Positions 2,891 through 47,200 of a stretch of 64,000 bases of DNA are shown here, one piece after another. Origin of the DNA: Thalia democratica (taxonomy: Eukaryota). Under the pieces are notes generated by a model. That model was not told the origin of the DNA, searched no databases, and was given only the letters and a program-made list of their open reading frames with translations. Position 1 is the first letter of the stretch; every line of letters starts with the position of its first letter. The DNA is taken from contig OZ241827.1 of assembly GCA_965202585.1 (NCBI GenBank), forward strand, positions 13,330,001 to 13,394,000, written 5' to 3'. The position numbers and the translations under genes are program-made.

Positions 2891-2902
2891 TGAACTTGAC
2901 CT
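2891..2902 (-). promoter_or_regulatory. DR0-type nuclear receptor response element (AGGTCA-AGTTCA); also 38230-38241
   Basis: TGAACTTGACCT is identical in copies 1 and 2 while the sequence to its right diverges. Confidence 0.45.
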
Positions 2903-6293: not shown

Positions 6294-6301
6294 TGACGTA
6301 A
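6294..6301. promoter_or_regulatory. CRE/bZIP-like site TGACGTAA conserved in all three copies (40725-40732, 50578-50585)
   Basis: GTACGTTGACGTAACA is invariant in the three copies. Confidence 0.4.
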
Positions 6302-9300: not shown

Positions 9301-12300
9301 TTAAGTTTTTTAATCAACTAGCACATTAATTTTAAATGGATTTTATTATGTGTTGTACAATTTTATGATAAGTGAACTTACTATTTTAAGTTTCATTGAT
9401 AACCTAGTTTTTATAGCAAAATTATATACATAATTTTTTTTAATTAGCTTAACAATCTGTTTCAGAAATATCAAATACAATAAAATGTTTCATTTTTTTC
9501 ATATTATAAGAATAGACACAGAGAAATAAAAACTCAAAATAAATAGTATTTTTTTAATTCTAACCTGTTTATTTTTATTTTGTTATTTTTTTTATCATTA
9601 TAATTATTGAACTTTATTGTCAAACGAAGGACCTAGGCATTAAAACCTAAGCAACTTAAACTGTAAGACACTAGCATTAAAATAAAACATATTACAGTAT
9701 TGAAATAAACAAAAAACTTTTACAAAGTACAAACTGAAAAAACTCAAACTTTTATAACTAAAATATTTAAACAACTCGAAAGCTGTTAATTTTCAAATAT
9801 ATATTCCAAAACAATAGTCTTTAGCACCTCTTGTCAAAGTCTTTCAGATTCTGGCTCGAAATTCTAGGAACTATCCTGAAGATATAAGTCAACTATTCTT
9901 CATCAAACAAGAAATTTTAAAACGGCATTTATTTTTAACTTTAGATATAAATTTTCTTGATGTAGAATATTGATCTCAACAAATATTCGTTATTCATCAA
10001 TTTTTCAAAGTTTTACTACGGCATATTTAGTTAGAAATTACTTCAAATATGTGGTAGCAACAATTTATAAATCTAGCTTACCAATCAACTCAGCATCCAA
10101 TAATTTTAGAATCTAAAGTCTCAAGCACATTGACAATAGACCGGCAAAAAATCAAAATAAAATAGTATTTAAGATCTACTTTAACTATTATTTTCTGTTG
10201 TACCTTTTTGAAACCAAGAACAAAATAGTAATTTCGAGTAAAACTTTAAGCACTTTGTAATAAATAGATTATTCATCATTAGTTTTCTTCAAAATTTGAT
10301 AAATTAAATTACGGCCAAATAAAATGTTTTTTTGTCATTAAGGTCATTTAAACACGATTACATAATATAACTAACTCAATTTATTTCTGAGAACTTGTGA
10401 AACTTTCATTAAATAAAAACTGTACATATAGTGCAAAATAAATCACCTGCTATTAATAATTTTAAAAATAGTTCGATCAATTTGTGATTAATAATTTTTT
10501 TCACCATTAAGGTCATTGATTAAGAATAAGTTGTATAAATAACTCAACTAAAAAAAATACTTTTAAAACTTTTAAAAAGTGTGTTAATGTTAAAACTAAA
10601 ATGTGCGAAACCATATATGTTGTGATAAATATAAAGTTATGCTGGTACTGACACCCACAATGGTTCAGTTTAGACTTATTTCAAGGAAAACAAACAACAT
10701 ACAGACTATTCTTGCTAACATTTATTACTTTGCGGTTTTAAACAAAGATAAATTTAGGTCACCAAAAATAAAGTATTAACTTGCTAGTGATATTACCGCA
10801 CAATTTTAATATTATTGAAATAAAAATGTTATTACATATATTATTAGTTTTAACTTCAATTTTTGTTATTTTCATAAATTTTAAAAATATATTATGTAAA
10901 TTTAAAGAACTTAAAAAAGGTTTTGTATCTTAACAATTATAAAAAAATGCTTTAAATAACAAAATAATATTTCATACAAAAATATAAAGTTTGATTTAGT
11001 TATTAAAAAAAAATAATAAAATATTTTGTACAAAGCATTAGAAATACTATTGTCTATCTTTAAACTATTTTATTTATAAATGACTTAAACTTCTTAAATT
11101 TATTCTATTTGATTTCTTTATTTACTGTGTTTAATATAGTTATAATCCTTTTTTTACAAATTGAAAAAACTTAAAAAATGGTTTTGTGTCTTTAAATTAA
11201 TATAGAAAAGCGTTGTAGATAACTTTACAGTATTTTAAATATAAATACACGACTTGATTTGCCAATTATTTAGTAGTAAATAAAAAAAAATGTTTTAAGT
11301 TAAATATTAAAAGTATTTTTAAATATGTCTTAAAATGTCTTAAACTAAAATTTTTACTTATCATATTCAAATTAGTTTTGTTTAATACGATTACTTTTTT
11401 GTAAGTATAAATTTTCTCATTGCTAAACAAGCCTATATTAAATTTTAACTTAATTAAAGAAATTACAAAGTTTGATTAACAAAATCTACCTCAAGTTACT
11501 TTCGTTTGTTTCCTGTTTATATAACTACAATGCTACAAATTAACGACTGTTTTTTTTTTTTTGCTTTTTTGGTAAAAGTTTAACTTGCTTTATATTTTAA
11601 CTTATGGTTTATTCCAATTAATACCATTTACTGAATGTAGGCTCTAGAGAACAATTAAAATTGTATTGAAAACAACGCCATACCAAAATAAACTTTGAAT
11701 TGTTTTTTTTTGGTAAAATTATTTATACATGTGCTTATATTTTAAACTTGGTTTGAATCCTTTTATCTAATGTCAAATTAAAGCTTTGATTGTACTTCCT
11801 ATCAGCAAATTATGTATTTAAGCTTTCTAATCTTTTAAACTAACGTACCACACTGCAATTGGATAATATTATTTTACGGTGAGACTAATTTCTTTTTTTT
11901 TTTTCAAACTGTAATTCGGTGATACCGTTATTTATTTTATGTTATTATTTTTAAAATTTTAGACTAGTTGCTTTTTTTTCGCGAAGTAACTTATAAACTA
12001 TGCCGTGTTTTTCCATAAAACACTGGCAAACTCACATTTTTACGATAAACTAAAACAAAGTTCAAGGTATATGTTACAAATTTTAGCCTTATGCACTGAT
12101 TAAAAAAATAACATTGAACATAAACTATTACAAAAAATGCAATCTGTTTAAATTACCTCTAAAATGATAATAATTATAATTTGTTCTAATTATTAAAATA
12201 GATTTTACTTCTTACTTTCAGTTTTTATTACTTTCTTTTCACTTTTAGGCTAGTTAAATTTGTTTTCAATGTAAACTTTTTTTTAAGTTAGAATTATACA

Positions 12301-13855
12301 ATAATCATAAAGTACCAAGTATTAAGTCACAACAATTAAAATTATTTTATTATGATTAAAATCATACAAGTTTTCAAATATAAGATTGAAATATAAAACT
12401 GCTTAATAAGTTAAAAAATTTAAAGTATTTCGAAAGTTTACGTAATACTCTTGGCGATAGGCGGTACTTTAGTTATAAGGGAACTAAAAAGCCCTTAACT
12501 TAACATTTTTTAAATATAGTTTAGTTAGATTTAAACATCGCAATTGCAACCAATCGTTTTTAAACAAAACTTTAATAAAAAATAAGGATTATAACTTATT
12601 AATAAAATCACTATTTTGTTTTGATTTTTTAGATCGGAGAATCACTCCAATACTCCGACCGAGGCGACGCCTATAGACCAAACTACTAAAATTTATTAAA
12701 CTATTTTAGAAATTTTGGAAACTTTATTGTAAACATTACTGTCAAAGATATTGTTAAAACGTTTTTGAAAAAAAAACCTCAGTTTATTATTTGGTTTGGT
12801 TGGTAATAATTACAAAGAAAGAGATTTTGTCAATTATACTAAAGGTTTATACTTGAGTGTTCCGGAGGCTTTAATGAAATTTCGAAAAACGCAACAATTT
12901 ATAACTTTTATAGTTATTTTGTTCAAAATTTTAGTTTTGTTAAATTTGACATAATGATGTTATTATAGAGCTAAGTTGTGGAACACGAAAAAAGAAATTT
13001 TTTTTTTTTTCAAATAAGTCGACTAATTCAAATTTAACTTTACATAATTTCCGGAAACAAATGCGTTTTATGAAATTATCTACTTAATTTAGTAATCTTT
13101 TCTAAAGGGTATTTTCATGTGACTTCTTCAGAATTTTAACGCAAGTTTGAAGCTAAGTATTTTAAGTTGAAATTACTTATTTTATTTTTTAATATGCAAA
13201 CCGCATGATCTACTTACTAAAAAATCGGTTTAACGTTTCACTAAAACATTACTGAAGCTAAAACATTTACTAAAACTTTAAGCTATGATTAAATTATTCA
13301 CTTAAAAGATTATTCTAATCTTTAACATCCTAATTAAAATTTACATGGTTCTACTTACTTTTATGTTCTTAAAATATGAAATATAGTTTTTATATTAATT
13401 TTGTACTTCTTAAACATTTTTACTACGCTTGTTTGCTAAGTTAATAATAAAATAATTTGTTATAAATATTTGCCTTTTTACTAAATTAAAGGTATATTAG
13501 TTACATAATCTTTTACATACTATAAAGGAAAAAAAAGAAGTATTACACATTTCGTAATATTAATTTAAAAAAAAATTGTAATGCAAATATTGAAAAATGT
13601 TTTCACAAAAGTATTGTTTTTTCAGTGATCTAAAAACTTTTTTTGAAAAATAATATAAACTCTTATAATGGCAACTAATTATGACGTTATAAAAGTTTAT
13701 AAAAAAAAAACTACTTCAGCTTTATGAGAATACGTTTGTATTAATAAGAAAATTTTTTAATAAATTTTTTAATAAAATACAAAACGTTTAGACTTAATCA
13801 TTTAAGTAGAAGGAACAGATATGTTTGAGTTATATTATGTTGCTCTGATATCATA

Positions 13856-13863
13856 TGACGTCA
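13856..13863. promoter_or_regulatory. CRE palindrome TGACGTCA; also 47390-47397, one mismatch at 57388-57395
   Basis: Perfect CRE at the homologous position in copies 1 and 2. Another perfect CRE is at 27305-27312 in NR intron 2. Confidence 0.45.
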
Positions 13864-15369
13864 TCACGCGTCACTACTAAATAATGTATATTTATATTAT
13901 ATCTACTTTTAAACTTAAATATAACCTTTTTTAACAAAAACTATGGAAAATAAAAAGAGTACAACTTGTTAAAGAAGTTTAGGTTTATAAAAATATTCGA
14001 TTATTGAAATAAACTTATAATTTTCAAATATAAAAAGGTAATTAAATATATAGAAAAGCCATACAAAAGACAATACTATAACTTTTTCGCTTATAGAAAA
14101 TGTCGACATAATTCACTTGGGCCACAATTTTGCATATCAGTAAAAAAAGCTCAATCTTTCAAATAAAGTTTCCATATTTCCATTATTGGACCACCGGGTT
14201 GCAACTTCTCTGCAAACTGGATACTCGGGTTCCGTTCTTATTAAAACTAGCCGCATTTTTTAAGTAACCGAAGAAAGCTGCAGTCGTCAACATGCAATCA
14301 GTCATCATAAATATTCAAATGAAGTCGAAACCAGGGTTTCAGTTTACTGAGAGTCTACGGTCTAACTACTCGAAACATATGATCAAACTTGTCAATAAAA
14401 ATACTAATGCAAACTGATCAACAGTTAAAACTAAACTGTTTATTTTGTTAAGTATTTAGTAAAACGAGCATAAAACTATGAGTAATTATAGATGTTATAA
14501 CAAAATTTTCCAAAAGTTGTTAAAGTTTTTCCTGTGTGTAGTGAACTTTACTACCTTTATTTGAATTCTTATATTAGTTTTTGAAACCTAAAATACTTAA
14601 GTTGTGTAACATAGTCTTCATGTTTTACACAAAGCATAACAAGTATTTTGAAAACTCTATGTTTAATAAAATAAATGTCTTTAGATATTTTTTATTTTTA
14701 TTGTTCGAACTTTGTTTTAACTTATAAAACTCAAAGAAATAAACTCCAGTAATTAATATTACAATTTTATTCAGTCACAATAAGTTTTTGAAATTTTAAT
14801 TGGACATAATTTTTCAATATAGAACCAAGTTAATTAATTTTTGTATTTTTTAATGTTTTTAAAGTATAATTGTTTCATTTGTGACCAAATATAATATTTG
14901 AAAATAAATTCGACATACACCAAAATGAGGTAAGATATATATAAAATTGATGATCACTTAAATGTTCAACTTAAATAAGTTTGTGCACGCAAAGTATGCA
15001 CAAGATGCATTAAGACTAATCAACTGAAGTTATATATTATTCTAATAACTTTATTGTTTAAAGTAAACTCTAAAGTCATAAAAAAATAAAGATAAAAGTA
15101 GCTTTACATAAAACCCTAAGTTTAATTAAAAATATTAAATGACTTAACTAATAAAAGTTTATTAAAAAATTACACAGACTATCATTAAAAATGTGAGGTT
15201 ATAGCTTTTTACGTAATTAATTCGATTACATTCTAAAAAACTTAAGATATTTGTGAATGTGGTCGTAATTTAACAGGTATTGAGCTTATTGTCAGTTAAA
15301 ATTTCACATCAAAATATTTTTAAGGCGTCAATAAGTTGGTCAAAAATTTTAATAACTACAAAATAAAAC

Positions 15370-15381
15370 TGACCTTGAACT
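15370..15381 (-). promoter_or_regulatory. DR0 / TCAAGGTCA-type nuclear receptor element (AGTTCA-AGGTCA); also 59087-59098
   Basis: TGACCTTGAACT is identical in copies 1 and 3. Confidence 0.45.
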
Positions 15382-15823
15382 AGGGATAGTTTAGTAAACA
15401 TCAAGTTTCAAAAATAAGAATAATCAAGTTAGTACTAATTTATTTATTTAATTTAAACAAAAAGTGTGAGAAAGTTCTTGTTTAAAAGGTCAACTTTTAT
15501 ATTTATTAAGTTCAGCTAGAGTAATATTTAGTTACATTGTTTTATTTATTTTGTGTTTTATGCGTTTATAACATTTCTATAGTCTAATATTGATATTTAA
15601 CATTAGAGTCGAATTTAAATTTGATTGGATTTCCTTAAAACTTAGATTTAGTAAACAATATTACATAATGAAACACAATTTTATAATATACTTTTTAAAA
15701 TATAAACTTTTTTTTAAGAGTGTTTACCTTTTGTACAAGTAAACTTTCCAAAATGAATATTTTTTATAATTCAGATAAGTTTTATAACAAACTAAAGACT
15801 TTTTTTTATTTTTTTTTTATAGA

Positions 15824-15933
15824 TTATTGAACGACAAAAAACCTGAAATATTTGGTCTTAGGATCTTCTGCATAAAGAACCTCTCGGTTATCGAATTGAA
15901 CACCAAGGATACCTTCTAACGTCTTGTTTAGGA
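15824..15933 (-). CDS. Candidate short terminal exon of the NR gene (VLNKTLEGILGVQFDNREVLYAEDPKTKYFRFFVVQ*)
   Basis: The only non-repeat, non-MITE GC-enriched island I found downstream of exon 3. CAG acceptor at 15936-15934. Open only in phase 1, the phase exon 3 needs. Stop at 15826-15824, AATAAA at 15810-15805 (inside a T/A run, so weak). A plus-strand reading of similar length is also possible. Confidence 0.3.
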
Positions 15934-16156
15934 CTGTTTGGTTGGTTAAAACGCAATTAAATACAGACCAGTTTTGCAAAATACTGTTCCATAAAACTCA
16001 AAAGATTATTTTTGTTTAAAGACTTATTCACTTTACTATGAACTATAAACCTATCAAAAAAACCATAAAAAATGTCGAGTAAAGCAACCTTTTCAGCTAC
16101 TTTTGTGTAATTTTAAGTATAACATTGTTAACAAGGATGCATAATATGTTTTAAAC

Positions 16157-26557: not shown

Positions 26558-26785
26558 AACAAACCTGATTAAATAATTCTCACCCTGGTAAACTTATGAT
26601 ACATGATTACATATACGCATATATATATAAGTGAATATTCTGGATAAATACAAACAAACATAATTTAAACATTCCCACCCTTATACACTTTGATAAACTT
26701 ATAAAATTGTATATTGTTTGTATATTATATATCTATAAACAAACCTGATTTAACCATTCCGACCCTGATACACTTCTGATACCTG
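26558..26785 (-). repeat. Degenerate tandem copies of the exon 3 3' end and donor
   Basis: 26558-26605 matches 26738-26785 at 39/48 ungapped. 26653-26690 matches 26738-26775 at 33/38. Confidence 0.88.
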
Positions 26786-26874
26786 CAATGAGCGCAATGT
26801 GTTCTCGTCTTCTTACTTATCAGGCAATTCTCCTTCGCGCTACACCTGTACTTGGCTTTCTTCTGTACACTTCT
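26745..26874 (-). CDS. NR coding exon 3: second zinc finger (130 nt); not in the supplied ORF track
   Basis: TTACAG acceptor. Translation [43 protein letters not shown]+G with four zinc-ligand cysteines. GTTTGT donor at 26744 (phase 1). Confidence 0.95.
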
Positions 26875-29800
26875 CTGTAATAAATAATTTATATTATGTA
26901 TTTACAAAAACTTTAATTAATTTTTTTGTATACTTCTCTTAAGTATAAACTTAATCTAATTTAAATACTGTATTATTAAAATTTTGCTCTGCTTTTTATG
27001 CTTTCTGTAATAAAACAAAAAACTTTAATGCTATAACTTAAGAAACTTTTAGCTTGTCTTCTAAACTCTTTTATTTAGCACAATAAAAATAGTAATAATT
27101 AATTTATATGTTTTATTTATAAAACTTGTACTAGTCTTCTTTTGCATACTCAACTCCAATGAGATAAAAATACATAAAAAAGAAATATACTTTATTTTAG
27201 TTGTTCTAATATACATTATTGATATCAAAATTATTTGCCTAACACTGTTGTCCTGTGTTAATGAAATAGTTATTTTTCTGCATGCTTCTCTGCAATTACA
27301 AATATGACGTCATATAAAACATTCATCACTAGTTTGTAATTCTTTATTTAGACATGCGCGCTGTTAAATTGATGTTAAACGACTTCTTTGTTTAGACTTG
27401 ATACAGATTTAAAAGCTTTATTCTTTTAGTGACTTATCTTACATTCTTAGAAAATGTATTTTTAAATCTTTTCAAATTTTAATAAACTTCAGGTAAACTT
27501 TATTTAACTTTTATAAAATAAGGAATATTTTTTTCCTATCACTTTCCTTGTTCATTATAAAGCTTAGAACTTTATTATAAAACAACTAAATATTAATATA
27601 ATATACGGCTTAAAACAGTACATTATTAATGAAAATAATTTTTTTTCAAAGAAATTAAGCTAATAAGTTTTAAAATTGTAAAGTATAACTAAATAAAAAA
27701 AAAAGTAAAATCAATATTTCATACGACTCAGTTAAAACATATATTTTGAAAATAAATTATAAACAAAAAAAGAGCAGTTTGGAAACGTGACAAGAATGTA
27801 TCAATAACAAATTAAAATCAGAACAGTTCAAACACAATTACTGATATGGTAACGATGATTGGGAAATAAGTGTGAAATGTAAATTAAACTGCTTTTTGAT
27901 GTACTGATAATTTTCTGACAAAAATGTTTTGAGTAAAAAAAAATTAAACTTTGATATTACTTCAAAGTTTTATCATGTGAAGCCTTATGTTAGATGTATT
28001 TTATGAATATGTGAAAAAGCATAAACAACTAAATTGTATTAGATTTTCGTAAAAACATTGTAAATATAAACAAAATGTTTATTTTTATTTTAAACAACAT
28101 GTGCTTGTTTATCGTAATCGTCAAACATACAAAACAAATGATGAACAGCTTTATTTCAATAGTAAGTTTTCACAGATTTTATTGCATTTTTTTAAACAAA
28201 TTTTAAATTGGTTGTTTATATTTTATTAATATTATTTTGACATAAAACAACTGTTTATAAGTAAAAAAATGTCTGAAGATTAAATAAATAAAGATGTTTT
28301 ATTAAATCAGTCATATGCGTCATAAATATAAAACTATTCTAACGTGGGAAAAAAAAAACTTATCTTGATTGATAAATCCTTTAATTTTTATTTAAAAAGT
28401 TTTTATTCTTTTTATTTTTACAAATTATGATTACTTATTAAATTGATTTAAAAGTTTATACTGTTTGATTTAAATACTAACTGTTATTAAATCGTTAGAA
28501 ATTTTCTAGGCTTAGTTTCTGGGAAGTATATTATTTATTTAATATTTAAATAATATTAATTTCTATAAAACTTTATCTCATTCAGCAGTTTTTATAACTT
28601 TACTTTTGACAAAAAAGTTTATATTAGTCATTAAGTAAATTTTAAATTAAATTAAAATTAAAACATATAATCTTGTTTAGTCGATATGTATTTTTGAGCT
28701 ACAAAAGTAAAAAAATCTGTTAATGCATAAAGATTGATTGTATATATGTTTTGTAGTTTTATGCTTCGAAAATATTCTATTTGTAGCTTTTTTATATTGG
28801 TTTGATGACATTTTTTAAACAAGCGATGATTCATGAAATTTTTTAAATTTGTTTAAAATAGAATTTCTTAGAAATACTAATTTACCTTTATTAAATTCAT
28901 GTAATGAGTAATATACGACAACATTTAGATTAATTTTGAGCCAAAAAAATTGTGTACACTACTTTGTGTAAAGAAAATAAAATTTTAAGCCACATCATTT
29001 TGTTAAAATGTTTTAAATTTAAACGGTACAAAATTTTTATATTCAATACTTTTATTCAATATTTCAAATACTTTTGGAAAAAAATTAAAATCTAATTTTT
29101 TACTTTGATAAAAGCTTTAAAACTCAATAACAAAAAGTGTTACAAAAGTTTAATACTATAAATAAATTTATAGATATAGGTTAACTTATAAAAGTCATGA
29201 AATGCATTTAGCGTTTAATAGAGACTATTTATAGTTAAGTTTATAACAATAAACAGTATTATGGCTGACATAAATATTTTTTTTTTAAATTTTGGCTGTA
29301 AAAAGCATTACTTAAAACTTTATACCAGAACTCAAACGTTAGAGTGTAAATTAAATTAATATACTAGTTTATAGTAACAATTCGTTTGTAGAAAAACGAA
29401 TTAAATTTTAGTTGGTGGCTATGTTCAGAACATGAAGGTACAGCATAATCAAAAATATTATCTGTTTTGTTTCTGAGAAAATAGTTGTATTTAAATTAGT
29501 TTATGTAAACACTGGTTTAACTGACTAAATAAAAGTTCGTCTACGTTGAGAAACCCATTGTACTTACGAAAACATAGATACTTTATTAATAATTAAAAGA
29601 TATTTTTGGCTACATAAGATGTATATTATTTAGAATATTTGAGCCATTTAAAACATAATAGTTTTAAAAGGTAAATTCCCTTACCTTTAAAAACCCTTAA
29701 CATCTCTCGCACGCAATTCAAAAATGGTTACACAGCATTAACTTATAATATACAACATTGAACACTTATCTAAAAACTTTTAAAATATATATTTAAAAAA

Positions 29801-32800
29801 TTTTAAACAAAACTGTTAACTAACTTTGTTAATTTAAACAAAAATAATTTCCCTTTCCGAAAAAGGAACAAAATTTATTTCAAAACTAACATTTTTTTTA
29901 CAAAATAAAATCCCATACTTTGAAAAACCCCTTGAAATATTCAAACAGAAAACTCAAGAATTACAAAAAAAAAATAGAAGACTAAAATTAATACCAAATA
30001 ATTAGTTTTTAATAAATAAACTAAAGTAAATATGTAAACTTTTTAAATAAAACAAATAAATCCCCTACCTTGAAAAATCCTTTGCATCCCTCGCACGCCA
30101 GCACGCCGTAATGCTGCCACCTGGCGGAATCTCCGCAAACGGTGCACACCGTCGCCCCGAAACCCCCGTAACCACCCAGATACGAGGTGGTGGTTGTGAA
30201 GGAGGGGTGCACGTCGTTAAGGTGGCAGGTGAACGTGGGGTGCTTGTTGCCATGGGTGATTATGTGGGGGTAGGGTTGCGAGGGGGTTATCTTAGGTGTT
30301 TCCCCTCCGCTGGGGTTTGCAACCTGAAAAGGGGTAACAATTAAAGTTTATTAAAATAATTTATTTACCTTTTTATTAAAATTATGACTTACAAAAGTTC
30401 TGTCACATTTTTTTGTTTTTGTTTTTTTTTTTCATTATATAAAAAATGTGCTTCTTTAGAAGCGTATCTAAGAAGATGTTCATTGCAAACACAAATAGTT
30501 TAATTAAAAATTCGATACAAAAAAAAGCTTAAATTAACTTTAGCTTAGAAAATTGTACTATTTTTGCACCTTTTGGCAAAATTCTTTTAAATTCTATGTT
30601 GCAATGTTAAAATACTATTTTGATACTTTTAGACTATCTCTTAAAACTTATGCTTATAAAACTAGAGCCTGTAATAAAGAAACAAAATGATTTACAAGCG
30701 AAAAGAAAAGTTTTACTATTATCAAATACTCATTTTACTTTGCATAATTACTGTAATATCTTATTTTTTACTTACATTATACGTTTTATTTCAGATTTAA
30801 GGTCTTCTTTATTAAAAAAACGATTTTTATTTTTTGAAACAAAAAAAAAATACATGAGTAACAAAAGAAGTTAGAATTGTATTTGAACCCTGCAAAAGTA
30901 CTTATTGAAAAGCAGTAATGACAATTATATGAGTTCGGCATTGTATTTATTAAAACATAATAACATGACAACATTGTAACTTGCTTTTAATTGAGTACAA
31001 AGTTCAAAAAGTAATTTGCTTTCTTTTTAGATTTTAAATATATATTATAACCTTGATTTTCAAAGGAAACTTTTTTGAGTATACTTTTTAAATAAAAAGC
31101 TGAGTTTATAAAATTATTGTCAAAAGTATCAGATATTTATTTTATTTTCTATAAAGATTTTGCTGCTACTTTCTATATTTAACGAATCAAATGTTTTTTT
31201 CTAAAACATTCAGCTTTAGCTTATATAATGTTTTAAATCTAAAACAGTATATGTTTAAAATTTAACAAATAAGAAACCCTATTTATTTGCAAATACAGAT
31301 ATAATTTATTGATTAAAAATCAACAGGTTTTGTTCACAGATAATAATAAATGAGGAAAGAACAAGATTTAAATAATTCTACAATTACATAAAAGCTGTAC
31401 TTGATTTATTGGAAGTATTTATTAAAAACTTTAAAACAAGTTTGTTTTAAACATTCTTAATTAAGTTAATTATTTTATCAACTATTAAACTATGTGTAAA
31501 CATTTTTCTCCAAGTTACTTGTAAATATATTTTTTTACTTGAACATATGAAAACTCATTTTCAAGCAAAAGCTCTCAATTTTGTTTTACAAAATAAAAGA
31601 TCAACAACCAAAACAAATAAATTATAAAATAGTAAAACACACCTTTCTTATGTTATTATATAGATAGTTTTATATATTTAATAAGTAGCACCAGCTTAAT
31701 TAAAACTTTTTTCAAACAAAAAAAATTAAATAAGTTCCTTAAACCATTCTCTTACTATTTTATTACGTTTTAACCATCTAATTAGTTTAATGTGTATATT
31801 TATGAATCAGTCAATACGCAAAAAGACATAACTTTCTAGTTTTTACAAAAAAAAAAAAAACAATCAACCTAAACAAAACTACTAAAAAACAACATCAACA
31901 ACTCACCCTTCTAGTGAAAATAGTAGAAATAATGTTTAGCATTAACTTAAAAGTTTTATAAATAAAGTTATAAAGCAACAAAACTCACACTCCTGATAAA
32001 GTTGCTGATCTTCTCTTCGAACTGGTCCGAAGGCTTGAAGCTTTTCAGGCTCGGCTCGCAAACGTATCGTTGGGAGAAACCCCCTCCTGAAACTTTCCGC
32101 TTCGCTGGTTTCACCGCCTTGAACGCCGTTGCCTGGTAACCTGAATTCTCAGGCTCGCTCCTGAACGACGAGATCGAGTTCACAGGGATCAGCTCGTTGC
32201 TATGGATATGTTCGTTGCTATAGTGATTATTGGATTCTGGGGGTGGTGGGGGTGTCGTCAGGGGTCGGCTGATCTCAGGGATGAGCTCCCGGTGGGGAGA
32301 ATTGATGCCGGAGGAGAAGAAGACGTCGGAGCTCAATTGAGCCTGATGGTTGTAAATAGACCTCTGTGACGTCATAGACGATACTTCTTCGTCTTTTGAG
32401 GAGAAGAACGCTTCTCCCAGCTCGATCATCGGGACCTCAATGTCGTCAAACAAGGAGCTTTTAATTTTAGGGGCTTCCCGGATACTGGAAACCTGCGGCT
32501 CGTACATGCTCAGGTCGAGCGGGTTGTCACCCCTTAAGGTTTCGTTCGAGGGAATTTTCCCTTCTGGGGATGAGGAGCACATGCTGACGATGTCGTCGTA
32601 GCTGCAATCCGATTGGTTTCTATGGAAACAGGTCGAAAGGTTGACGTCCTGCGACCCATGCACCCTCCTAGTGGCGGACCCCGCGAAAGTTTTGGCGGGT
32701 AACTTGGGGTCGCGTCGCGTGGCAACGAAGATGTTGCTGCCAAGCGACGGGTCGAAGTCCTGGTCGAATATGTCGTCGAAGAGGAGACCCCTGGTGGTGG

Positions 32801-32858
32801 AAATTGTCGCCCCCTGGTGGTAGCACCTGTCGTCGTTTGTAAACTCGCTCTTCAGCAT
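26745..32858 (-). CDS. NR4A: Divergent NR4A-type nuclear receptor, spliced model join(32858-31989, 30323-30069, 26874-26745); 418 codons + 1 nt, 3' end unresolved
   Basis: Three GC-rich exons join in frame via GT-AG introns (phases 0, 0, then a phase-1 donor). DBD reads [26 protein letters not shown]|[43 protein letters not shown]. The QHYGV, CEGCKG P-box, VQKxAKYxC and GMVK motifs match the NR4A pattern ([27 protein letters not shown]...GMVKE). The introns after FFK and after GMVKx give the 43-codon+1 (130-nt) second-finger exon I recall from vertebrate NR4A genes. Symbol is family-level only. Confidence 0.85.
29674..30098 (-). repeat. Degenerate tandem copies of the exon 2 3' end (P-box region) and donor
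   Basis: 29674-29714 matches 30058-30098 at 34/41 ungapped. 29911-29936 matches 30061-30086 at 21/26. Confidence 0.88.
30069..30323 (-). CDS. NR coding exon 2: end of A/B domain and first zinc finger with P-box (85 codons)
   Basis: TTTTCAG acceptor (AG at 30325-30324). Open frame [11 protein letters not shown]...[33 protein letters not shown] donor at 30068. Confidence 0.95.
31989..32858 (-). CDS. NR coding exon 1: N-terminal A/B domain (290 aa)
   Basis: Long GC-rich ORF 32858-31968 in AT-rich flanks. ATG in an AAATAAAATG context. GTGAGT donor at 31988-31983 after ...NFIRS (phase 0), matching the phase of the next exon. Confidence 0.9.
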
Positions 32859-35269: not shown

Positions 35270-38200
35270 GTTTTCAAATTACAGATGCAAATGATAGTTT
35301 TCATAATATTAAATGTTTCACCTTATAAAACTTAAAAAGAAAGTAAAAAATAGTATAAAAGTTATGGGCAAACTACACCCGCTAGAAATCGAAAAATTGA
35401 TCAAAATGTTTTAAAAGTGTATTTATAGACTTTTAAATATAGAAGGTTTGTGTGTTACTTTAAAAAATCTCTAAAATGTAACAATTAAAATTAAGGTTAT
35501 ATTTATTTTAATAATTTGTTAATTCAAAATTTTCGTAGAAATTAAAATATATGAAGAAAGAAGTTTCAGAATCTTAGTTTTTTTCTAAAAACTTTTTGCG
35601 GTTATGTTAAAATTTATTTAAAGTTCTATAATTACCATGGTGGTAAAATGATGTAACTTTTAAAGTATTTTAGTTGTGCTAAATTAAATATTTCTAATAA
35701 ACGTATACACAAAGTGTACTTTTGAGATATCATTTTAAGAGATGTAGTAAAATTAAACAAACAATCTTAATTTAGTTTATCATAGTTAAATAAAAAATCC
35801 AATGTAAATGTCTGACTTATGACTTAAAAAAGACAAATTAAATTTTTTCATGTTATTTTTATCCAATTATACGCTTTAAGTATTGATTAAATTTTGTTGT
35901 TTATATTAAATCTCGGTCTTACAATAAAGTTTTTGTCTTTAAAATCATAATCCAGTAAATTAACACAGTAGCTTATCAAATTAACAGATCGAAGTTTTTT
36001 TTTTTTAATTGACACTTTATCAAATTAGAATATAAATTAATAATTGTTTGGTTACTAAAAACTTATTATAGTTTTTTCACTAATTTGTTGTAATTTTTTT
36101 TAAGAACATCTGAAATTTGATAAAATAGATTGAAATGTAGAAGTCGACAGTAATACTTAGTTTTAATACACTTAGTTTAAGAAAATAAATTACGTTTTAT
36201 AAAGTAACCCTATTTTTATTAAATAAATACTAAAGTGCATTGCAAAATAAACTATTCAAAAAGAATTGGAAGCATAATAAACTTAAAACAGACTAAATTA
36301 AAATAACTATCTCGTTCAATGAAAAACATCTCATTAAAAAAAGTATTAAATGAAATATGTATTTTATAAAAGTTTGCGTTTTTAGACTAAAAAACTAAGC
36401 GTTAAGAGTGTTTTGAATTATTACTAACTTTAAATGTTACCGACTCAATGTCATTTTTTATTTTTAAAAACGAACAAGTAAGTTTCAACACAATCAATTA
36501 AAATATTGGTTTCTATTATCAGTTTGCAGTATTTAAAAACAATTGTTTTAAGTGCAAACAAACGCAATTTTCCTGCGTGACAGCGATTAATTTTAACACC
36601 ATTTCAAAACACCGCGTAATCAAAAAATAATATTAACAAAAGTAAAAAAAAACATTATTTTTGCTATGACTATAACCAAATAACTGCGAACTAAAATTTT
36701 ATGCACTATATAATTTTTTCTTCCCAAATGTAACTGCATAACTTTTTTAATTGCCGACTTTTAAGTAAACGAAGAAATTACTCATGAGTGGTCAGCCACA
36801 ATAGAAGTAATACGTGCTTCCAACGAGTTAATTATACTTAGAAAATTTTAAAAAACCATTGTTTCAACTGCAACCAACGCAACGCAATTTTCGATTGTCA
36901 ACCATTAATTTAAAACACCATTGACACAAAATGTTCTTGTAAGCGGTCAGCCACTTTAGAAGTTTAACGTGTTCCCAACTTAACCAAATTGCCAATCAAA
37001 CAAATACTTACATGAACGTAGGAAGCTACTCATCCGACCAGTATATCAAGAGTTTGTTTACATATATGCCCAATTGACACATCTCCACTTTACTGCTTGC
37101 TGTTGACAAAACTCGTGTAAGTGTCAGGATTGTGCCGGGGTACGAGCTTTATACGTGACACAATTTTGAAATTCTGTTTCACGTTTTTATCAAGTTTATT
37201 AACGTAAATTCCTCATAAGCTTTAGTTTTGTTTTGGTGTCAGTATGCACTCTAAAATTTCTTAAATACTTAATAAATTTTTTATGTTACAGCAATTTATT
37301 GTATTGCATTTTACGCAGTAACTATAATTAAAGAATTCTAATAGCTCTAAATTGAAATCTTAAATATTAAGAGCTTAAAAATAGAAGAAAATATGGTTAG
37401 TCTTTCTGAAAATAAACACAAGAAAACTAGGAGTATAAACATAATCAAACACGTTTTTGAAAATAACCTTAACCTGCTGTTTTAAAACTTTTGATGTTTC
37501 AACATAAAATAGCTTTTAACTTGTGTATTAAGTAATATAATAGCAATTAAGTACTATTACTTATAAATTCATTAATTATCATGTCATTATTCACAAGTCT
37601 CCTACTTATAAATTTTTCAGCCTTTTACTGTACTTAAACTGATTATTAAATAATATTAATTAAAAACTGGCTTTTTTAAGCTTATACTTAAAATTTGAAC
37701 TATTTACTTTGCTTGATATTGTAATATTCACATATGTAGTGCAGTTTATTAATGTTTTTTAAACTTATTTTAATTAAATATATGCGTTTTATACTCATAA
37801 CTTAAAACTTAAAAAATAACAAAATAAGCACTATCTCAATAACACTAAAATATCAAACAATTACCTATTTAACTAGAAGCTAATATTATGGTCTATTCTT
37901 AAGCAATTTTTTTTGCTAAACCATAATGTTTTCGCTAAATCACTTTGCTTGCAAAACAAAACAACCAAAATTGCAACGCCGTACAAGACCAATCCAACTT
38001 GTTGTATAAAGATAATAAATAAGTAACAACTTCCCAGTTTGGAAATTACTACCAGCAGAACTCGTTCCGGAGCTTTGTACTGCCTGTTTTTACAACATGA
38101 CAGATTATATAAACAAAATAAATGTAGTATGGCGCTTTTGTATGAGGGATTACTAAAATCTTTACTTAGCTTGTTTTTACACAACAATTGGTAACTGGTA

Positions 38201-41200
38201 GCTTCTTGTGGTTCCACTGGTGCAAAAACTGAACTTGACCTGGAAGCTGGTTTATTTTGACAGTTCAGTTTAAAATATTAAAGGTAAGTATTATTAGAAG
38301 TAGTAGAAAATAAGAAAATTAGTAAAATCAATATTTGGTAAAAATTTGAATATTATACTCACTACTTTTTACAACTAGACTCTGTTTGAAAAAGTAAACA
38401 GTATATTGTGCTTAAAGTTAAGGTAAAATAAATGTATTTGCTCTGCATGTTTTAGCTTTTATTACAACTTATTTTAATTATGCGTTAGATTTAACAGATA
38501 AAAAAAAAGTTAATGTCTTACTTGAAGCAGTTTATAATTTTGCTTCTATAGGAAAAAGTTTTGCGTAAAACTAAAAGGACAACAAATTTAATCCTGTGAA
38601 AGAATTATAATTCTTAGAACATCTGGTGCCAAACAATTTACTTATTAAAAGTTCTGTGTGTTTTCTGTTTAAACAATTTAATTCAGCCTTGTCAAAACGT
38701 TTCTCGTAAAGCTAAACGTAATTGGTTTTAACTTTTCTATTTTTTAAATCAGCTTAAAAAGCGAAAAAGTATTCTTTTCTAACTGAGGTTTATAACAGTC
38801 TCTTTTCGTTCGTTTAATCACTGTCTTGTTTTACTTATGTTGGTCAAATAAAAAATATCTTAACCTCTGAAGAGGTTATGATTAATGGTTTTTTAATTAC
38901 TTGTACATTATATAAAGTTTTTTAGTCACAATTAAAATAGCAATTTGTTATACAAATTAAACTCTTTCACCTTTATTAAAGTTTTGAACAAGCAGTTATG
39001 AAAAGGCTTAAAAGTATAACTTTGTAACTACTGACAAAAAAGCAAAAACTACAAAAGCCTTTTTTTTGATTGTTGCAAACTAAAAATGAAGCAACCTAAG
39101 AATAAAACTCTGTTAGTTTTTTTAAGTTAAGACAATACTAGGTTGATTGTAGTTTTATCACTATCTAAAATATTTCCATCGTTTAGAAAATTGTGTAAAA
39201 TGTTTTTCGTAATTTATATTAACTATTTTGCTAACACAAAGCACTGATTAAAAGTTTAAGTAAAAAGTAAAGTTTACAAAACAAAATAACAATCCTGAAA
39301 ATTTGACTTACACGAAATTTTGCTATTTTTAGCAAAATCTAAACTAAATCAAAACCACCATGAAATAAGGTTTTAAAAGATAAATCATCTACTGGCTTTT
39401 GTTTAAAATAACTGATAATCTGTAAATAGTTGATTGCAATTTATAGTAATTAGCTTTATAAAAACTTCTTTGAAGATGGTAAACCCTTTGATAATTGCTT
39501 TTTAATGTCCCGTAACAAATTTTACAAGTTTTATGTAAACAAAACTATGTGGTGTATTTCAGATCAGAGTTTAAATAGCATTTTAGATATTTTCTTGTAA
39601 AAAACCGCAATACTGTTGTTATTTTAAAAAAAATATAACTAGAACACGTGTTTTTAATAATAATTTTTAAATTTTGAAAAGGTTATATAAAATGACCTTA
39701 AATAATAATATAAAAACTAAAATTGGAACATGATTTATCATACTAACTAAAAGCTTAAGTTTTAAACTAACAGTTATAGTGTACTAACTCATTACAATTA
39801 ATAAAACTGAAAAAAAAAATAAAATCGAGTACTTAGTCTTTATTTAATTTATTATTATTATATAAAATTTTTTTATCTTGTTACTTTTTAAATAATAAAT
39901 GTCAAAAAGAAGATTGTGGCATTGTAAAATAAAATATCATTTACAAAAAAAGAAAAAAAATCACTTTACTAAATTGAATAAGATAAAAAGTTGATAAAAA
40001 ATTTATCTTGTTCTAATTACAAAACAATTGAAATAAATTTCAAACAAACGTCAGAAATTTAATAAAACTTACATTATAAGATTTTAATGATAATGTTTAT
40101 TACAATATAATGAAATAATACTTAGTTTATTATTAGCTGAAAAAAAATTAAGTTCATTTGCTATCAATATTCATTTCAATCTAAAAAATAACCCTTTGAT
40201 TGAGTTTTTGTTAAAATGTTATGCACAAGTATAAGATGAGTAGAAATAGCTTAAAAACTATGATTAATTTAAAACTAAAACAGGTTTTGCTTTTTTTTCA
40301 ACAATATAAAACCTTTCGCTAATACAAAAATGTGTCAAATATGTTTTTTTTTTGTTAATACTCTGCTAACAATATCAAAATTGAATAAAGATTTAACAAT
40401 AAAGCTTTAATAAAGAATTGCTAACTGCACGTTTAATATAGTATAAAAAATTCGCAAATTATCGAAACTAAGCTGATATTTTGAAAGCTTATTTAAAAGT
40501 GTTATTCTTTTTATTTAAAGGAAGTATAAGTAAAAAAGTAAATCTATTTGCATTTGTTCATTACGTAAGATAATTTTTAGTCTTATATGTCAAAGAATAA
40601 TAAATGTTTTTTTTAACGATAGTAATTAAGTGAAACATTTTTATAGAACTCAAAGCGTGATAAAAAACCTGCAATTTCAGTCTTAAGTGTATTTTGTTAC
40701 ATTTAACACATGAAAACAGTACGTTGACGTAACATTTAAAATGTTTATAAAAGTAGAAAATAATATAATTCCTAAAGTTAAACTAGCGTATTTTAAACTC
40801 TTTTTTTAATTTTTGTGAATATTTTTTTACTAGTTATAAAACAAATTCAAAGTTTAAGATAATATCAAAACGAACAGACTAGAACTACAATTAAGTTTAG
40901 AATCCCAAAAGATTTAATTAGAATAAATTTTTCTTAATTACATCAAAAATAAGGCTATTTTACTTGTTTTAAACAGTAAACGTGCTAAATATGTAACAGA
41001 CATGTCACAATAGTTAAAGTTTGAGAAAATACCGTTTACCCATGTGAAAACAGGAACAGGTGGGCAGAAATGGAATTAACAAGTTTAATCCGAGTCAGTT
41101 TTAGCGCAAGCACCTGCTTCTAGATTAATTTTTCTGACGGAGAAATTAAGTACTTTTCAAGAATTTTTGACCCAAACTAAATTAACTACTTTTTTTTCAC

Positions 41201-44200
41201 TTAGTTTCAATTTTTTGCACAATTTCAAACTTTAAATAAGCCAAAAAGTGTATTTTACAACTTGGTATGTATAGTTTAGTGTTTCTAATAAGTTAATTAC
41301 GTAAAACTGTTTCTTTTTTTCTACTAAACTTACTGAAGCAACTTTCTGCTAAAGTTAAAAATTTGTCTTTTAATTCAGTAAAGTTTTTTGTTCAATGTTA
41401 AATCACCAATTAAATTAAACAAAAGTTTTACTAACTTTATAATAAAGGTAAATGAAATCCTTATATGTGTTTTATTATAGTCTATAGCGGTTTCAATAAA
41501 CTAGTTTACATTACAACTAAAGAAATTATAGAGTTTTTAGTTAAGCCCTCTATCAAATACATTAGAACAAGTCAAAGTATTACAAAGGGATTTGTAAACC
41601 GTCATGCCATCAAATAATTTTTTATCAAACTTATGAAGTAAATATTTTTAAAAGGAAAACCTATAGTTACAAAAACAGGAAATAAATAATCTATTTAAAA
41701 CAACTCGTACATGAAAAAAGCAAATCTAGTCTATTTACAAATAAACAAACATTTCAAAGAATCACACGCAAGCTTTTATGTTAATGGTCATGAGGCAAAC
41801 CATTTAAATGGTCATTTATAAATCTGTTAACAGATTTGATTGACTTGATAACTTATTATCGACTTCTTTCAAAACAATTAAAGAAAACAAAGCAAAATGT
41901 TTAGTGGGTTTATTAGACTTTTATTTTCATTCCTACTTTATATAAACAGTACTTAGTATAGGTATTATAGAATGTATAATTTATGAATGTATTGTAAATA
42001 AATTTGTAACAGTTTAAGTAGTTTTTCTCCCTTAACAGTACCCATATACACACTTAACAAATAAAAACAATACTAAAACAAAAATTAGTTTCTAACAAAA
42101 CTTATCAGATAAGATTACTTTTCGTTGTGATAGCCATTAACTGGTATACAGTTAAAAATAAACTTTTAAAGTTTCCAAATCTTCTGAAACTCTAAAACGG
42201 TTAATCTTATTAACGTGATTTTTAAGGGTAAAAATAACAATAAAACGTTATAACTAATTGTTCCATATTTCTTTTTTAGCAAACATTTTGTTTAAGCTGT
42301 TTCTTTTTTGCAGTAAGGCTTAGTTTTACTTTGATAATGTTAGAATTTAAAAAGAGTAAGAGTTTGTGAAGTCAACTATATCATTGATAGATATAGAATA
42401 TTAACAAAAAAGGAAAAATAAAAATAGAGGTTTCATCTAAATTATATTTTGCTCTGAATGCCTTAAAACTAGGCTTTTAAAGTAGAAATGCTAATTGTTG
42501 ATCGACTTTTTGTGACTTCAAATAAGTTAGTGAATGATTTTATAAAATCAATTTGTGAATAAAAGTTTTTAAAGTAACATCCTGCTAACAATACGTGCTT
42601 GTTCTACAGATTTCAAACATGATGTTGTATAAATAACACACAAATACGTGTTTACCATTGAGTTTGCGGTCTTAAACAAACGTCAAAGTTTAACGCAACT
42701 TACTTATTATTATAAACATTAGCTTTTTTATTAGGTGCTTATTAATTGACTTAAACATGCCTGTTAAGCTGATTTTCGTATAATGTACATTTTAATTCAA
42801 GAAGTAACGTCAAATATCTCTACTAAGAACTTAAATACTTTTTAAGATTAGGCATTGATAAAAGCTTGCGGTAAGAAATCAAATATTGTTTTTGACACAT
42901 CGGATAACACATATTTCTTGTTGTTCATTATTAAAGTCAATTAACTTAAGTTTATAAAAATTTAAATCAAGCTTTTCAAGAAATCAAATGAATTTGTTTT
43001 AAGAATGTTTGATAAAAGTATTTTAAAGTTTTGTTTATTTTGAATAAATAAAAAAAATAGTTTTAATGTTTTTAGGTAATTAAAATTTGATTTCATATAT
43101 AAGTTTTTATCAAAAATTTTAATCATTGTTTTCTTTTACAGCCAAAACCAGTACGCTGAATAAAATGTTTTATTTTTAACAATTTCGGTGTTGAGAAAAA
43201 CTACAAAAACTTTTAAACAATTTAAACACATTTTATGGTGAAGTTTCTGATTTATCTAAGGTTGAACTTACAAATTTAAAAGACTACATATAAAGTTTTT
43301 TTTTTTCCGCATCCTATATGACATCATCAAGTTTCGCAACTGTTAAACTTTTAAATTTTAGAATAGTCAATACAAGCTTTACAACATTTATAATATTGTA
43401 AAGTATAGTTGATTATTTTTAATAACAGTATTTGTAACGATTGCTTGTCACTAAGTTTTAAGGATGTTCACAAAAAAATAATTTCAAATAAATTCTGGAA
43501 GAAACTGAATTAAACTTGTTTTACATCTTTATTTAACTACACCTTTTATAGTTTCTAATTCAATAAGGTTGTAGTTATTGAAAAAAGCTTGCACAACTGA
43601 GTTTAAGTATGTAACAAGTTATTAAGCATAAAATATGCTTAAAAAATACTAAGACTTAAGTTTTTAAAATGTTTTTTTTTTTTCTATGTGTTGTACATTT
43701 TTTTACATAAATGAACTTACTAAGTTACGTTTCGTGGAAACCTAATTTTTTAATAAATTTGTTTACAATTATTCTATAATTAGCTTAACAAGTTGTTTTA
43801 GAAATATCAGATACAAATATAATGTTTTTTGTTCTGCATTTTCAAACAAAAAAATGAAAATAAAAGTCCGAAATAAAACATAGAAATTTTAGATCAATTC
43901 TAACCTGTTTATTATTATTTTCTGATTTTTTTAAACTATTATTTTCTTTTGTACTTCTCTAAAGCCAAGGAATAAATATTGATTCAATAATTACTTAAAG
44001 CACTTTGTAATAAATAGATTAATCACCATTATTTCCTTTTAAATTTTGATAAATTAAATTGTGGACAAATGAATGTTTTTATTCCACCATAGTTATTAAA
44101 CCCGGTTATGTGATATACTTGACTTGATTTATTTTCGAAAACTTGTGAAACTTTCATTAAAAAAAAACTATATATATTGTGCAAAATAAATCACCTGTTG

Positions 44201-47200
44201 TCATTACCTTCAAGTATAGTTCGATCAAGTTGTGGCCAAATAAAGTGTTTTTTATTACCATTGAGGTTATTGAGTACAGTTATATTATATACATAATTTC
44301 CTAAAACGTGAGAAGTTTTAAAACAAATATACTAACCATACCTGTTGTGATAAATAAATGCTTAACCTGGTACTAACATTCAGAATGATTCTGTTTAGAT
44401 TTTATTTCGATCACAACAAACCACTTACAGACTGATCTTGCTAACATTTATAACATTGCGGTTTTTTACAAAAAATTTTAGGTCAATAGGAAGTTTATAC
44501 AAGAAGTATAAGTTTTCTAGTGATATTACCGCAAAGTTTTTATATTACTGATAAAAAAAGTTATTATACTTATAGTTTTAACTACAAGTTTTGTTGTTTG
44601 AAAAGTTTTAATAACTAATGATTTTATTTAAACCACTTTAATAAAAGTTTTGTTTGTTGAAATTTCTACATAAAATATTTTAAAGTTATTTTATAATATT
44701 TTCAACGAAATAATAATTTTGTTTTATTATAAAAAAAGGAAATGGAAATATTTTCTTTAAATATTAAGAGTATATTTTAGTGTATCTTAATACATTTTAA
44801 ATTGATATTTTAAATTAACTTACTTCATTACTTACATTTGACTTAATTACTTATTTTGTTTGAGATAGTTGTATCTGTTTTTTTATAAATTGAAAAAAAA
44901 GATGGAAATTGAAACAAGTAAAAAAAAGTTTTGTATCTTAAAATGATAACAGAATAGACACTCTTATTGCATTTTAGATATAAATACACTTTTTGAATTC
45001 CCATTTTTTAACGGTAAAAAAAATTTCTTTTATAATAACTATTAAAAGTTTTTTTTAAGTCTGTCTTAAAACACTTAAAATTAAAATTTTACTTATCATA
45101 CTCAAATTAATTTGCTCAACACGGTTTTTTTTTTAACTTTAAAATTTCTTTACAACTAAACAAGCTTATATTAAATTTTAAGTCAGTTAATAAAATTACA
45201 AACTTTGATTAACAAAACTTAAGTGACTTTTGTTTGTTTTCTGTTTGTATAACTACAATGCTACAAAATAAAAGCCGAATTTTTTTTTTGATTTTTTGTT
45301 AATGTATACCTTGTTTTAAACTACGATTTAATCCAATTGGTACCATCTACTGAATGGTGAAAGATCTAAAAAACAATAAAAATTGTATTCAAAACAATGT
45401 TATACCAAAATAAAGTTTTAATTGTTTTTTTATGTTTTGGTACAATTTTTATACACGTGCTAATATTTTAAACTTGGTTCAAATGCTTTTATCTAATGTC
45501 AAATTAAAGGTTTGATGGTACTTGGTATCAACAAATTATGCACTAAAGCTTTCTTATCTTTTAAACTAACGACCCATATATATTGGATAATCTTATTTTA
45601 CGGTAAAACTAATTTTGTTTCTTCCTTTTCAAAGGTGATACCTTTAACTATTTTATGCTGTTATTTAAAAAAAAATAGACTCCTTGCTTTTTTTTTTGTA
45701 AGTTACTTTGCCGTGTTTTCTGATTTAGTTATAAAAATAGATTTAACTTTCAGTTTATTACTTTTTTTTTACCTTTAGGATAATTGAATTTATTCTCGAT
45801 GTAAACTTTTTTTTTATGTTAGAATAATCTTTTAAACAATAATTATAAAGAACTAAGTATTTAGTCACAACATTTAAAATTATTTAATTGTGATTTAAAA
45901 TCGTACAAGTTTTCAAGTATAAGATTAAAATATAAAACTGCTTAATAATTAGACGAAATTAAAAAGCCATTAATTTAACATTTTTGAAAGTTAGTGTAGT
46001 AAGATATAAACGACGCAATTGCAACCAATCGTTTTTAACAAAGTTTTCTTAAAAAAAACGATTTTCAATTTTCTTTATAAGATTATAGCAAATTTATTGT
46101 TTTTCTAGCTCCAAAAATCTACTCCAATTCTTCAACCTACGCGATGCCTTTGGTACGTCAAATTACTAAAATTTATTAAACCATTTTAAAAACTTTAAAC
46201 TTTATGGTAAACATAAATGTTAAAAATAGTGTTCATACGTTTTTTGAGAAAAATATCAGTTTATTATTTGGTTTAGTTGGTTATAATCACGAAAAAAAAG
46301 CTTTTGTCAATCACAGTTTAATTTATAATTGAGTGTTTTGGAGCTTTAATTAAATTGCGAAAAACATAATATTTAAAAACTATTATAATTATTTTATTTA
46401 AAATTTTATTTTTTGTTAAATTTGATATAATAAGATTTTTTTTTGAGCTAAGTTGTGGCACGCTAAAAAAGAAAAGTTTTTTTTTTCTCAAATAATTCGG
46501 CTAATTTATATTTTATTATATGTGATTTCCGGAAATAAATGCGTTTTATGAAATTATCTACTTAAATTAGTAATCTTATCTTGAAGGGATTTTAATGTGA
46601 CTTCTTCAAAAATTTTAATGTAAGTTTGAAGCTTATATTTTAAGTTTAATTTAGTATGCAAATTGCATGATCTACTTACTATTTAATCGGTTTAACGATT
46701 CACTATAACATTTACTAAAACTTTAACTATGATTAAAATACTTAATTAAAAGTTTATTTAATCTTTTACGTCCTAATTAAAATTCACATGGTTTTACTTA
46801 CTTTTATGTTTTTAAAATCAGATGTGTAGTTGTTATATTAACTTTGTACTTTCGAAGAAAAAAATATTATGTTTGTTTAGTTTAAAAAGATTACATTAGT
46901 TTTTAATAACTGCTTTCTATTGAACTATAATTTTTAAAGATCCGAAAGTTTGTTTTTTAAGAAGTAGAAAATAAAAACTTAATGTATTCCACATTCAGTA
47001 ACAGTTATTTTGAAAAGTCTTATACTCCAATGATTAGAAATACTGTTTGTCAAAACGGTTTTAAGTTAGCCATAGACAATTTTTGAAAATAAATATTCAT
47101 ACTTGTATTTAACAAACGATAGCAGTTTTAAACCAATGAACAAAATAATACTTGACATTTAAAAATAAACAAACAATTAAAGTTTTGACTAACTGTAGAA

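Follow-up and report, generated by a model that had tools for sequence, protein, structure and literature searches.

A four-exon locus of the salp Thalia democratica that very probably encodes an NR4A-derived nuclear receptor without a ligand-binding domain

Where does a nuclear receptor gene end if no ligand-binding domain (LBD) can be found behind its DNA-binding domain (DBD)? This question is raised by a stretch of 64,000 nucleotides from the salp Thalia democratica (contig OZ241827.1 of assembly GCA_965202585.1, forward-strand positions 13,330,001 to 13,394,000), which is referred to below as the window. On its minus strand, three exons specify an N-terminal domain and the two zinc fingers of a receptor related to NR4A. 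An earlier analysis made from the letters of the window alone (the sequence-only reading) had offered three models for the locus: an LBD-less receptor, a set of duplicated 5' cassettes splicing to one distant LBD, or a decaying partial duplicate. With high confidence, the locus is considered here to be a complete four-exon gene for a DNA-binding-only receptor of about 425 amino acids, the salp member of an NR4A-derived, LBD-less family of tunicate proteins.

The gene lies in DNA with a background GC content of about 22% in the 64-kb window, interrupted by a few GC-rich islands. Exon 1 (32858-31989, minus strand, as are all exons) holds the start codon and an N-terminal domain of 290 amino acids, has a GC content of 54% and ends in phase 0 at the donor AGT/gtgagt. 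Exon 2 (30323-30069; GC content 59%) contributes 85 amino acids up to the first zinc finger and its P-box and is in phase 0 at both ends, with the acceptor ttttcag and the donor AAG/gtaggg. Exon 3 (26874-26745; 130 nt, GC content 45%, acceptor ttacag) encodes the second zinc finger and the first base of a codon split by the phase-1 donor CAG/gtttgt. All three had been recognized in the sequence-only reading; open frames, splice sites and zf-C4 matches confirmed that they are real and that their outer coordinates had been given exactly.

Since a single G remains before the phase-1 donor of exon 3, AG/C. GT. CG. was the expected start of any homologous last exon, and the 26.7 kb downstream were scanned for this pattern on the minus strand. 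Two matches were obtained, at 24849 and 24983, which are 134 bp apart. The preferred one, copy B of exon 4 (24849-24827), sits 1.9 kb downstream of exon 3. Behind the acceptor ttttaacag it reads CT GTG CGT ACC AAA GGG AAA TAA, in which the CT completes the split codon to Ala; the resulting tail is AVRTKGK, with a stop at 24827 that is followed by the 3' untranslated region (UTR). In the actual 26.7 kb there is a single instance of the full pattern, an acceptor followed by A-V-R-x-K-x-x-stop; 300 first-order Markov simulations of this sequence yielded none. The spliced four-exon model specifies a protein of 425 amino acids ending in GMVKS-AVRTKGK; all of its introns are of the GT-AG type and all four exons are open.

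The same kind of end was observed in transcripts of relatives. Four contigs of 1.8-3 kb each (L003, L004, L005 and L006), which stand for three proteins from relatives, have coding sequences that end in GMIRS-AVRVKSR, GMIRS-AVRVKSQ or GMVRG-AVRAKR, directly followed by a stop and then by 0.5-1.4 kb of 3' UTR. Since no intron separates the N-terminal domain from the DBD in any of them, they are regarded as spliced transcripts. When the acceptor at 24849 is used, the salp protein extends 15 residues past the last Cys of its DBD, a tail length equal to that of the homologues P0018 and P0025. A comparison of the salp 3' UTR with those of the relatives' transcripts gave short matches at chance level only, and visual inspection suggested a CCTCAAT-like motif that found no support. 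One of the four contigs, L006 (JGI 3300019016, a metatranscriptome; protein P0062), has a GC content of 38% in its coding part and of 14-25% in its UTRs, and its source is probably a further pelagic tunicate that is very AT-rich; compared with the salp gene, its tail (AVRAKR) is shorter by one residue.

An LBD-less receptor could also end otherwise, by use of the second match, copy A (24983-24940), or by retention of the intron after exon 3. Copy A, an acceptor and tail in tandem with copy B, comes first in the direction of transcription and has a good tract (tatatttttacag); it reads tttttacag/CT GTC CGT ACC GAA GGA AAA and, if spliced, would give the tail AVRTEGKQNKTFFT and a protein of 432 amino acids. 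Read-through from exon 3 would meet a stop after six codons. Ends of this kind are considered unlikely, as it is copy B that agrees with the homologues both in sequence (A-V-R-x-K-x-x-stop) and in length (15 residues after the last Cys), whereas the read-through tail is without any homologue and the position of the intron concerned is conserved with Ciona. Copy A may serve as an alternative acceptor or else be a duplicate of the junction within the intron, and the product would be LBD-less in both cases. The first model of the sequence-only reading was right in proposing an LBD-less receptor of NR4A descent, while the ends it gave, at 15824 or by read-through to GLFIDI, are replaced by exon 4 at 24849. 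The open reading frame (ORF) at 15827-15997, which the sequence-only reading had put forward as an end, was rejected: it has no Pfam match, is unlike any tail of the family and is superfluous given exon 4.

Echoes of splice junctions, two of the end of exon 3 with its donor and one of the exon 4 acceptor with its tail, adjoin the real junctions and lie in introns. The echoes of exon 3, both of them degenerate, are located in the downstream intron at 26700-26550 on the minus strand (...gggtgggaatgtttaaattatgtttgtttg and ...cagggtgagaattatttaatcaggtttgttg), and a hidden Markov model (HMM) of the family DBD gave a weak match to a degenerate exon 3 copy at 26610-26732 (E 0.26).

The sequence-only reading had reported no LBD exon within reach of exon 3, and this absence was borne out over the whole 64 kb. 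LBD models were built from the parts behind the DBD of 23 NR4A and 10 RXR proteins and were used to search every one of the 3,733 stop-free six-frame fragments in the window that reach 12 amino acids or more; the best E-values, 2.7 with the NR4A model and 1.2 with the RXR model, are noise. As a control of sensitivity, the NR4A model was rebuilt without three of the proteins, and the LBDs of these were added as pieces of 40 amino acids. Nearly all of these held-out pieces (17 of 18) outranked every fragment of the window, 15 of them with E below 1e-4. The scan detected no conventional LBD exons between 15620 and 26745, where they might have been missed, and LBD exons concealed in the duplicated blocks of the window (4343-15551 and 39018-59272) were rejected on the same scan. 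A DBD model run on the fragments matched exons 2 and 3 only, besides the weak degenerate copy of exon 3. The predicted protein stops 15 residues past the DBD and contains neither the C-terminal PF00104 domain of the nuclear receptor superfamily nor an LBD of the NR4A type.

The DBD itself has the hallmarks of the superfamily. All eight zinc-finger Cys residues were found in canonical spacing by a regular expression on the spliced model (Cx2Cx13Cx2C ... Cx5Cx9Cx2Cx4C), the P-box EGCKG is intact, and both exons concerned match Pfam zf-C4 (E 8e-11 for exon 2, 5e-14 for exon 3). Among PDB sequences, exon 3 was most similar to the DBDs of NR4A2 and NR4A1 (46.8 bits vs 40.6 for RAR), and the best database matches outside the LBD-less tunicate family were canonical NR4A proteins with PF00104. 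A maximum likelihood tree of 43 proteins was made from 83 DBD columns. In this tree, 13 LBD-less tunicate sequences form one clade (support 100/98), which is nested with all NR4A/HR38 sequences (98/95) and apart from RXR, NR5A and NR8, and the salp gene joins three short-tailed transcripts (100/99). Branching within NR4A was not resolved, as is expected with so few columns. By these comparisons the DBD groups with NR4A rather than with other subfamilies, and a derivation of the LBD-less tunicate family from NR4A is supported.

Members of NR4A (NGFI-B/Nur77, Nurr1, NOR1, HR38) are nearest to the salp gene in their DBD according to the PDB and database searches and the tree, and share with it the EGCKG P-box, the motifs RxVQKxAKY and VGMVK and the intron after GMVK(E/S). 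They differ from it in that the salp gene has no hinge, LBD or activation function 2 (AF-2), and in that the salp protein lacks the A-box on which recognition of the AA extension in the NGFI-B response element (NBRE) depends. The T/A-box extension of NR4A (VVRTD...RGR...) was not found in the salp protein, in which the tail AVRTKGK is followed by the stop. In addition, the tunicate family has ARW for AAC, VLA for VRT and KKTRTH for KRRRNR.

Relatives of the salp gene were sought with exon 3 by a full HMMER search of 1.8 billion representatives. The closest single-domain matches are 63-70% identical and carry the DBD at their C-terminal end. They share a signature with the salp gene that consists of YGGFG before the first Cys, a motif in finger 1 and KKTRT(H/Q)C in finger 2. 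Ascidian members include a 'nuclear receptor' of Ciona intestinalis (XP_026691558 / Q1RLF6), H2YUF8 of Ciona savignyi, the 'NR-like nuclear receptor' CAB3264439 of Phallusia mammillata, LOC120341980 of Styela clava and LOC143468248 of Clavelina lepadiformis. Further members are CBY22780 of Oikopleura dioica and Logan, JGI and environmental contigs. PF00105 is the sole domain in all 17 family proteins that were retrieved, and an LBD is present in none. In the database searches made so far, the family appears to be restricted to tunicates.

Gene structure supports the common origin of the last exon. In Ciona (locus L007), the intron between the fingers reads TTC AAG/gtaatg ... tttcag/CGA TCC and is in phase 0 after GFFK, and the last intron reads AAA AAC G/gtaagc ... 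ttttcag/TT GTC AGA ACC GAC and is in phase 1. Positions and phases are identical in the salp gene (phase 0 after GFFK, phase 1 after GM(I/V)K(N/S)), and because of this agreement salp exon 4 (CT GTG CGT ACC AAA) is considered the homologue of the opening part of the Ciona last exon. The latter (VVRTDVQSRRKAAKTK...) starts with VVRTD, reaches a stop after 102 residues and is LBD-less. The Ciona gene is single-copy, and its downstream neighbour is unrelated and on the opposite strand. The signature, the N-terminal domain and the gene structure of the family were all found in the salp gene, which resembles the other members in its DBD signature (KKTRTHC..CRYQKC included), N-terminal motifs, C-terminal location of the DBD, lack of an LBD and intron positions and phases. 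It differs from them in the tail, which in ascidians consists of VVRTD, a basic A-box-like stretch and 60-110 more residues, while the salp protein stops after AVRTKGK. The D-box and the N-terminal domain of the salp protein have also diverged, a PLDLS motif is present in the salp clade only, and the salp locus is in tandem.

In Oikopleura dioica, a canonical NR4A that includes an LBD (P0174, 625 amino acids) occurs together with an LBD-less member (P0165 / P0037, about 420 amino acids). As this animal retains a canonical NR4A, the family is taken to be an NR4A paralogue and not simply the tunicate NR4A. A word-based search for canonical NR4A proteins of ascidians or salps with the Oikopleura NR4A LBD, which is highly diverged, returned the query itself only. 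The salp gene is a somewhat derived member of a family whose other sequences public databases already list with generic names. To say that such an arrangement is not known for NR4A, as had been done in the sequence-only reading, was too strong in view of these entries, although no paper describing them was found. This negative result applies to the full-text literature; subscription papers such as the 2003 Ciona survey were outside its scope, so that a published description of an LBD-less NR4A-like tunicate gene may exist. Ciona has been credited with 17 nuclear receptor genes, and NR0A genes are stated to have been lost early in chordates (2021 review, PMC7827873).

A full-length alignment showed N-terminal motifs common to the family: (R/K)-x-H-x-G-x-QDV-x-L, PMI..GEA, KR(K/R)VS and, just before the DBD, HP.V. 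In salp exon 1 the third of these is present as KRKVS. Close homologues of exon 1 were found in two TARA Oceans metagenome contigs, L001 (TARA_SAMEA2732231 scaffold_83178; 89% amino acid identity) and L002 (ERR599259 k127_1161204; 59%). Both have kept the start codon and the donor, and every indel is a multiple of three. By the method of Nei and Gojobori, the ratio of nonsynonymous to synonymous substitution rates (dN/dS) is 0.62 vs L001, based on a total of 45 differences; the two comparisons in which L002 takes part gave 0.34-0.36. Judged by these values, exon 1 is under purifying selection. The two contigs are about 1 kb each and hold just the GC-rich exon 1. The 5' flank of L001 is also closely similar to that of the salp gene, and this contig probably represents the same gene in a closely related animal; L002 may be the tandem paralogue or derive from another salp species.

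The sequence-only reading had also noted a CtBP motif, and this was confirmed as PLDLS at residues 113-117, encoded in exon 1 at 32522-32508 (minus strand). It is present at the aligned position in the salp gene, L001 and L002 (three of three) and absent from that position in the other family members in the full-length alignment.

Some observations weigh against the four-exon gene and the properties ascribed to its product. The model rests on genomic sequence and on transcripts of homologues. The exact spliced junction of exons 2 and 3 had no match in the metagenome contig collection, and a protein search with exon 1 returned the two genomic TARA contigs only and no transcript-derived protein. 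The exon 3 donor, gtttgt, is weak, and the two tandem acceptor copies leave the C-terminus ambiguous at 425 or 432 amino acids. The dN/dS values, which had been proposed for all three of the exons then known, were obtained for exon 1 (0.34-0.62), the sole exon with close homologues. The salp tail lacks the basic A-box that both NR4A and the ascidian members of the family have kept, and the binding-site preference of the salp protein may differ from theirs. Finally, binding to DNA, binding to CtBP and repression are all deduced from sequence.

Part of this evidence would also suit a pseudogene, meaning a partial duplicate that is decaying or not transcribed, a reading that gains from the weak donor, from the expression searches without a transcript match, from the degenerate junction copies around the exons and from the duplicated state of the region. 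It is nevertheless very improbable, since a pseudogene is at odds with four open exons, GT-AG introns, eight intact Cys residues and an intact P-box, with an exon 1 in which the start codon and the donor are conserved, indels are in frame only and dN/dS vs L002 is 0.34-0.36, and with a tail of the same length as in expressed homologues. The third model of the sequence-only reading, a decaying duplicate, is not supported in view of the intact frames and splice sites and of the behaviour of exon 1.

The duplication of the region is extensive. By self-BLAST, the upstream region of the gene (35368-48271) has a diverged copy at 151-15551, with about 70-80% identity. The left 15.5 kb of the window thus copy this upstream region, in agreement with the suggestion of the sequence-only reading that 15.6 kb there are the upstream region of another gene. 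Within the upstream region, a non-coding sub-block of about 9.5 kb is repeated in tandem with 88% identity (38809-48314 and 48670-58504); this duplication is much younger than the copy with about 73% identity at 4343-15551. The order on the strand of the gene is upstream block, promoter-proximal block, exons 1-4, about 9 kb of unduplicated sequence and then both blocks again, past the left edge of the window. Such an order is what one would expect if the entire locus had been duplicated in tandem, each unit measuring about 33 kb. At least one paralogue probably lies left of the window, and the sequence at 151-15551 would probably be the 5' flank of such a tandem copy, with its exons beyond the left edge.

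HMM, Pfam and Rfam scans revealed no DBD, LBD, Pfam or Rfam features in the duplicated blocks, and the tandem sub-block has no ORF, Pfam or Rfam content. In the window as a whole, Rfam gave no matches, and no other ORF of at least 75 amino acids has a Pfam match. Conservation among the three block copies was seen for GC-richer islands (47601-47900, 57651-57925 and 14101-14425), which could be regulatory elements. Islands of about 40% GC are also conserved between both copies of the locus (36851-37250 with 1251-1650 and 37926-38275 with 2626-2925); those at 36851-37250 and 37926-38275 lie 4-5 kb upstream of the start codon. They may be promoters, enhancers or 5' non-coding exons; the sequence-only reading had put a promoter at 37122.

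The second model of the sequence-only reading, in which variable 5' cassettes of promoter, N-terminal domain and DBD are joined by splicing to a common set of LBD exons beyond the window, would account for the tandem duplicate of the upstream region, the phase-1 donor of exon 3 and the window without an LBD, yet it is hardly credible, as the cassette has its own homologous, stop-bearing terminal exon 1.9 kb downstream, the spliced transcripts of relatives stop at that exon, and no tunicate family member (0 of 17 proteins) has an LBD, including the single-copy Ciona gene with its unrelated neighbour. The likeness to the UGT1A and clustered-protocadherin loci consists of tandemly duplicated 5' regions and an exon with a phase-compatible donor; the salp unit differs from these loci in having a terminal exon of its own, with the stop at 24827, and no shared constant exons.

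The four-exon gene is predicted to encode a long N-terminal domain, in which motifs are conserved, followed by an intact NR4A-like DBD of two fingers and a 15-residue tail that ends just past the T-box. A P-box of the sequence EGCKG reads half-sites of the AGGTCA type, and the A-box of NR4A reads the AA extension of the NBRE. From what is known of nuclear receptors, the salp protein would bind AGGTCA-type half-sites as a monomer; with its stop ahead of the A-box-like stretch, it may bind the bare half-site with less preference for the flank. Because a protein without an LBD can neither be controlled by a ligand nor use AF-2 or pair with RXR through such a domain, its activity would have to come from the N-terminal domain. 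PLDLS is a classic type of CtBP-binding motif, and its conservation in the salp lineage suggests recruitment of CtBP. A role as a constitutive repressor, or as a competitor at NR4A or half-site elements, is tentatively proposed as the most likely function.

The closest parallel in architecture is the NR0A group (insect Knirps, Knrl and Eagle; ODR-7), whose DBD-only design is also found in the salp gene. Knirps is an insect DBD-only receptor that represses through the CtBP-binding motif PMDLS, to be compared with PLDLS in the salp. The two groups differ in that the salp DBD nests in NR4A and that its family was found in tunicates only. That the nearest relatives of the DBD are NR4A proteins argues for an origin independent of NR0A. 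A possible history, put forward with reserve, is that the LBD of an NR4A paralogue was lost no later than the base of the tunicates, that the paralogue was kept in ascidians, larvaceans and salps, and that the salp copy was trimmed to the bare DBD, gained a CtBP motif and was tandemly duplicated.

In conclusion, the puzzle of a receptor without a reachable LBD has an ordinary answer: a short terminal exon had been overlooked, and the family was already present in protein sets. For annotation, the lesson is that coding exons of about 20 nt in a very AT-rich genome escape detection by GC content and that a homology-guided search is needed. The family is of interest for the evolution of nuclear receptors as a chordate DBD-only receptor derived from NR4A, which in Oikopleura exists beside the canonical NR4A. 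To this the salp copy adds the shortest tail of the family, a lineage-specific CtBP motif and tandem duplication. If the proposed reading is true, it would represent an independent re-invention of the Knirps design in chordates, possibly as a ligand-independent antagonist at NR4A-type sites.

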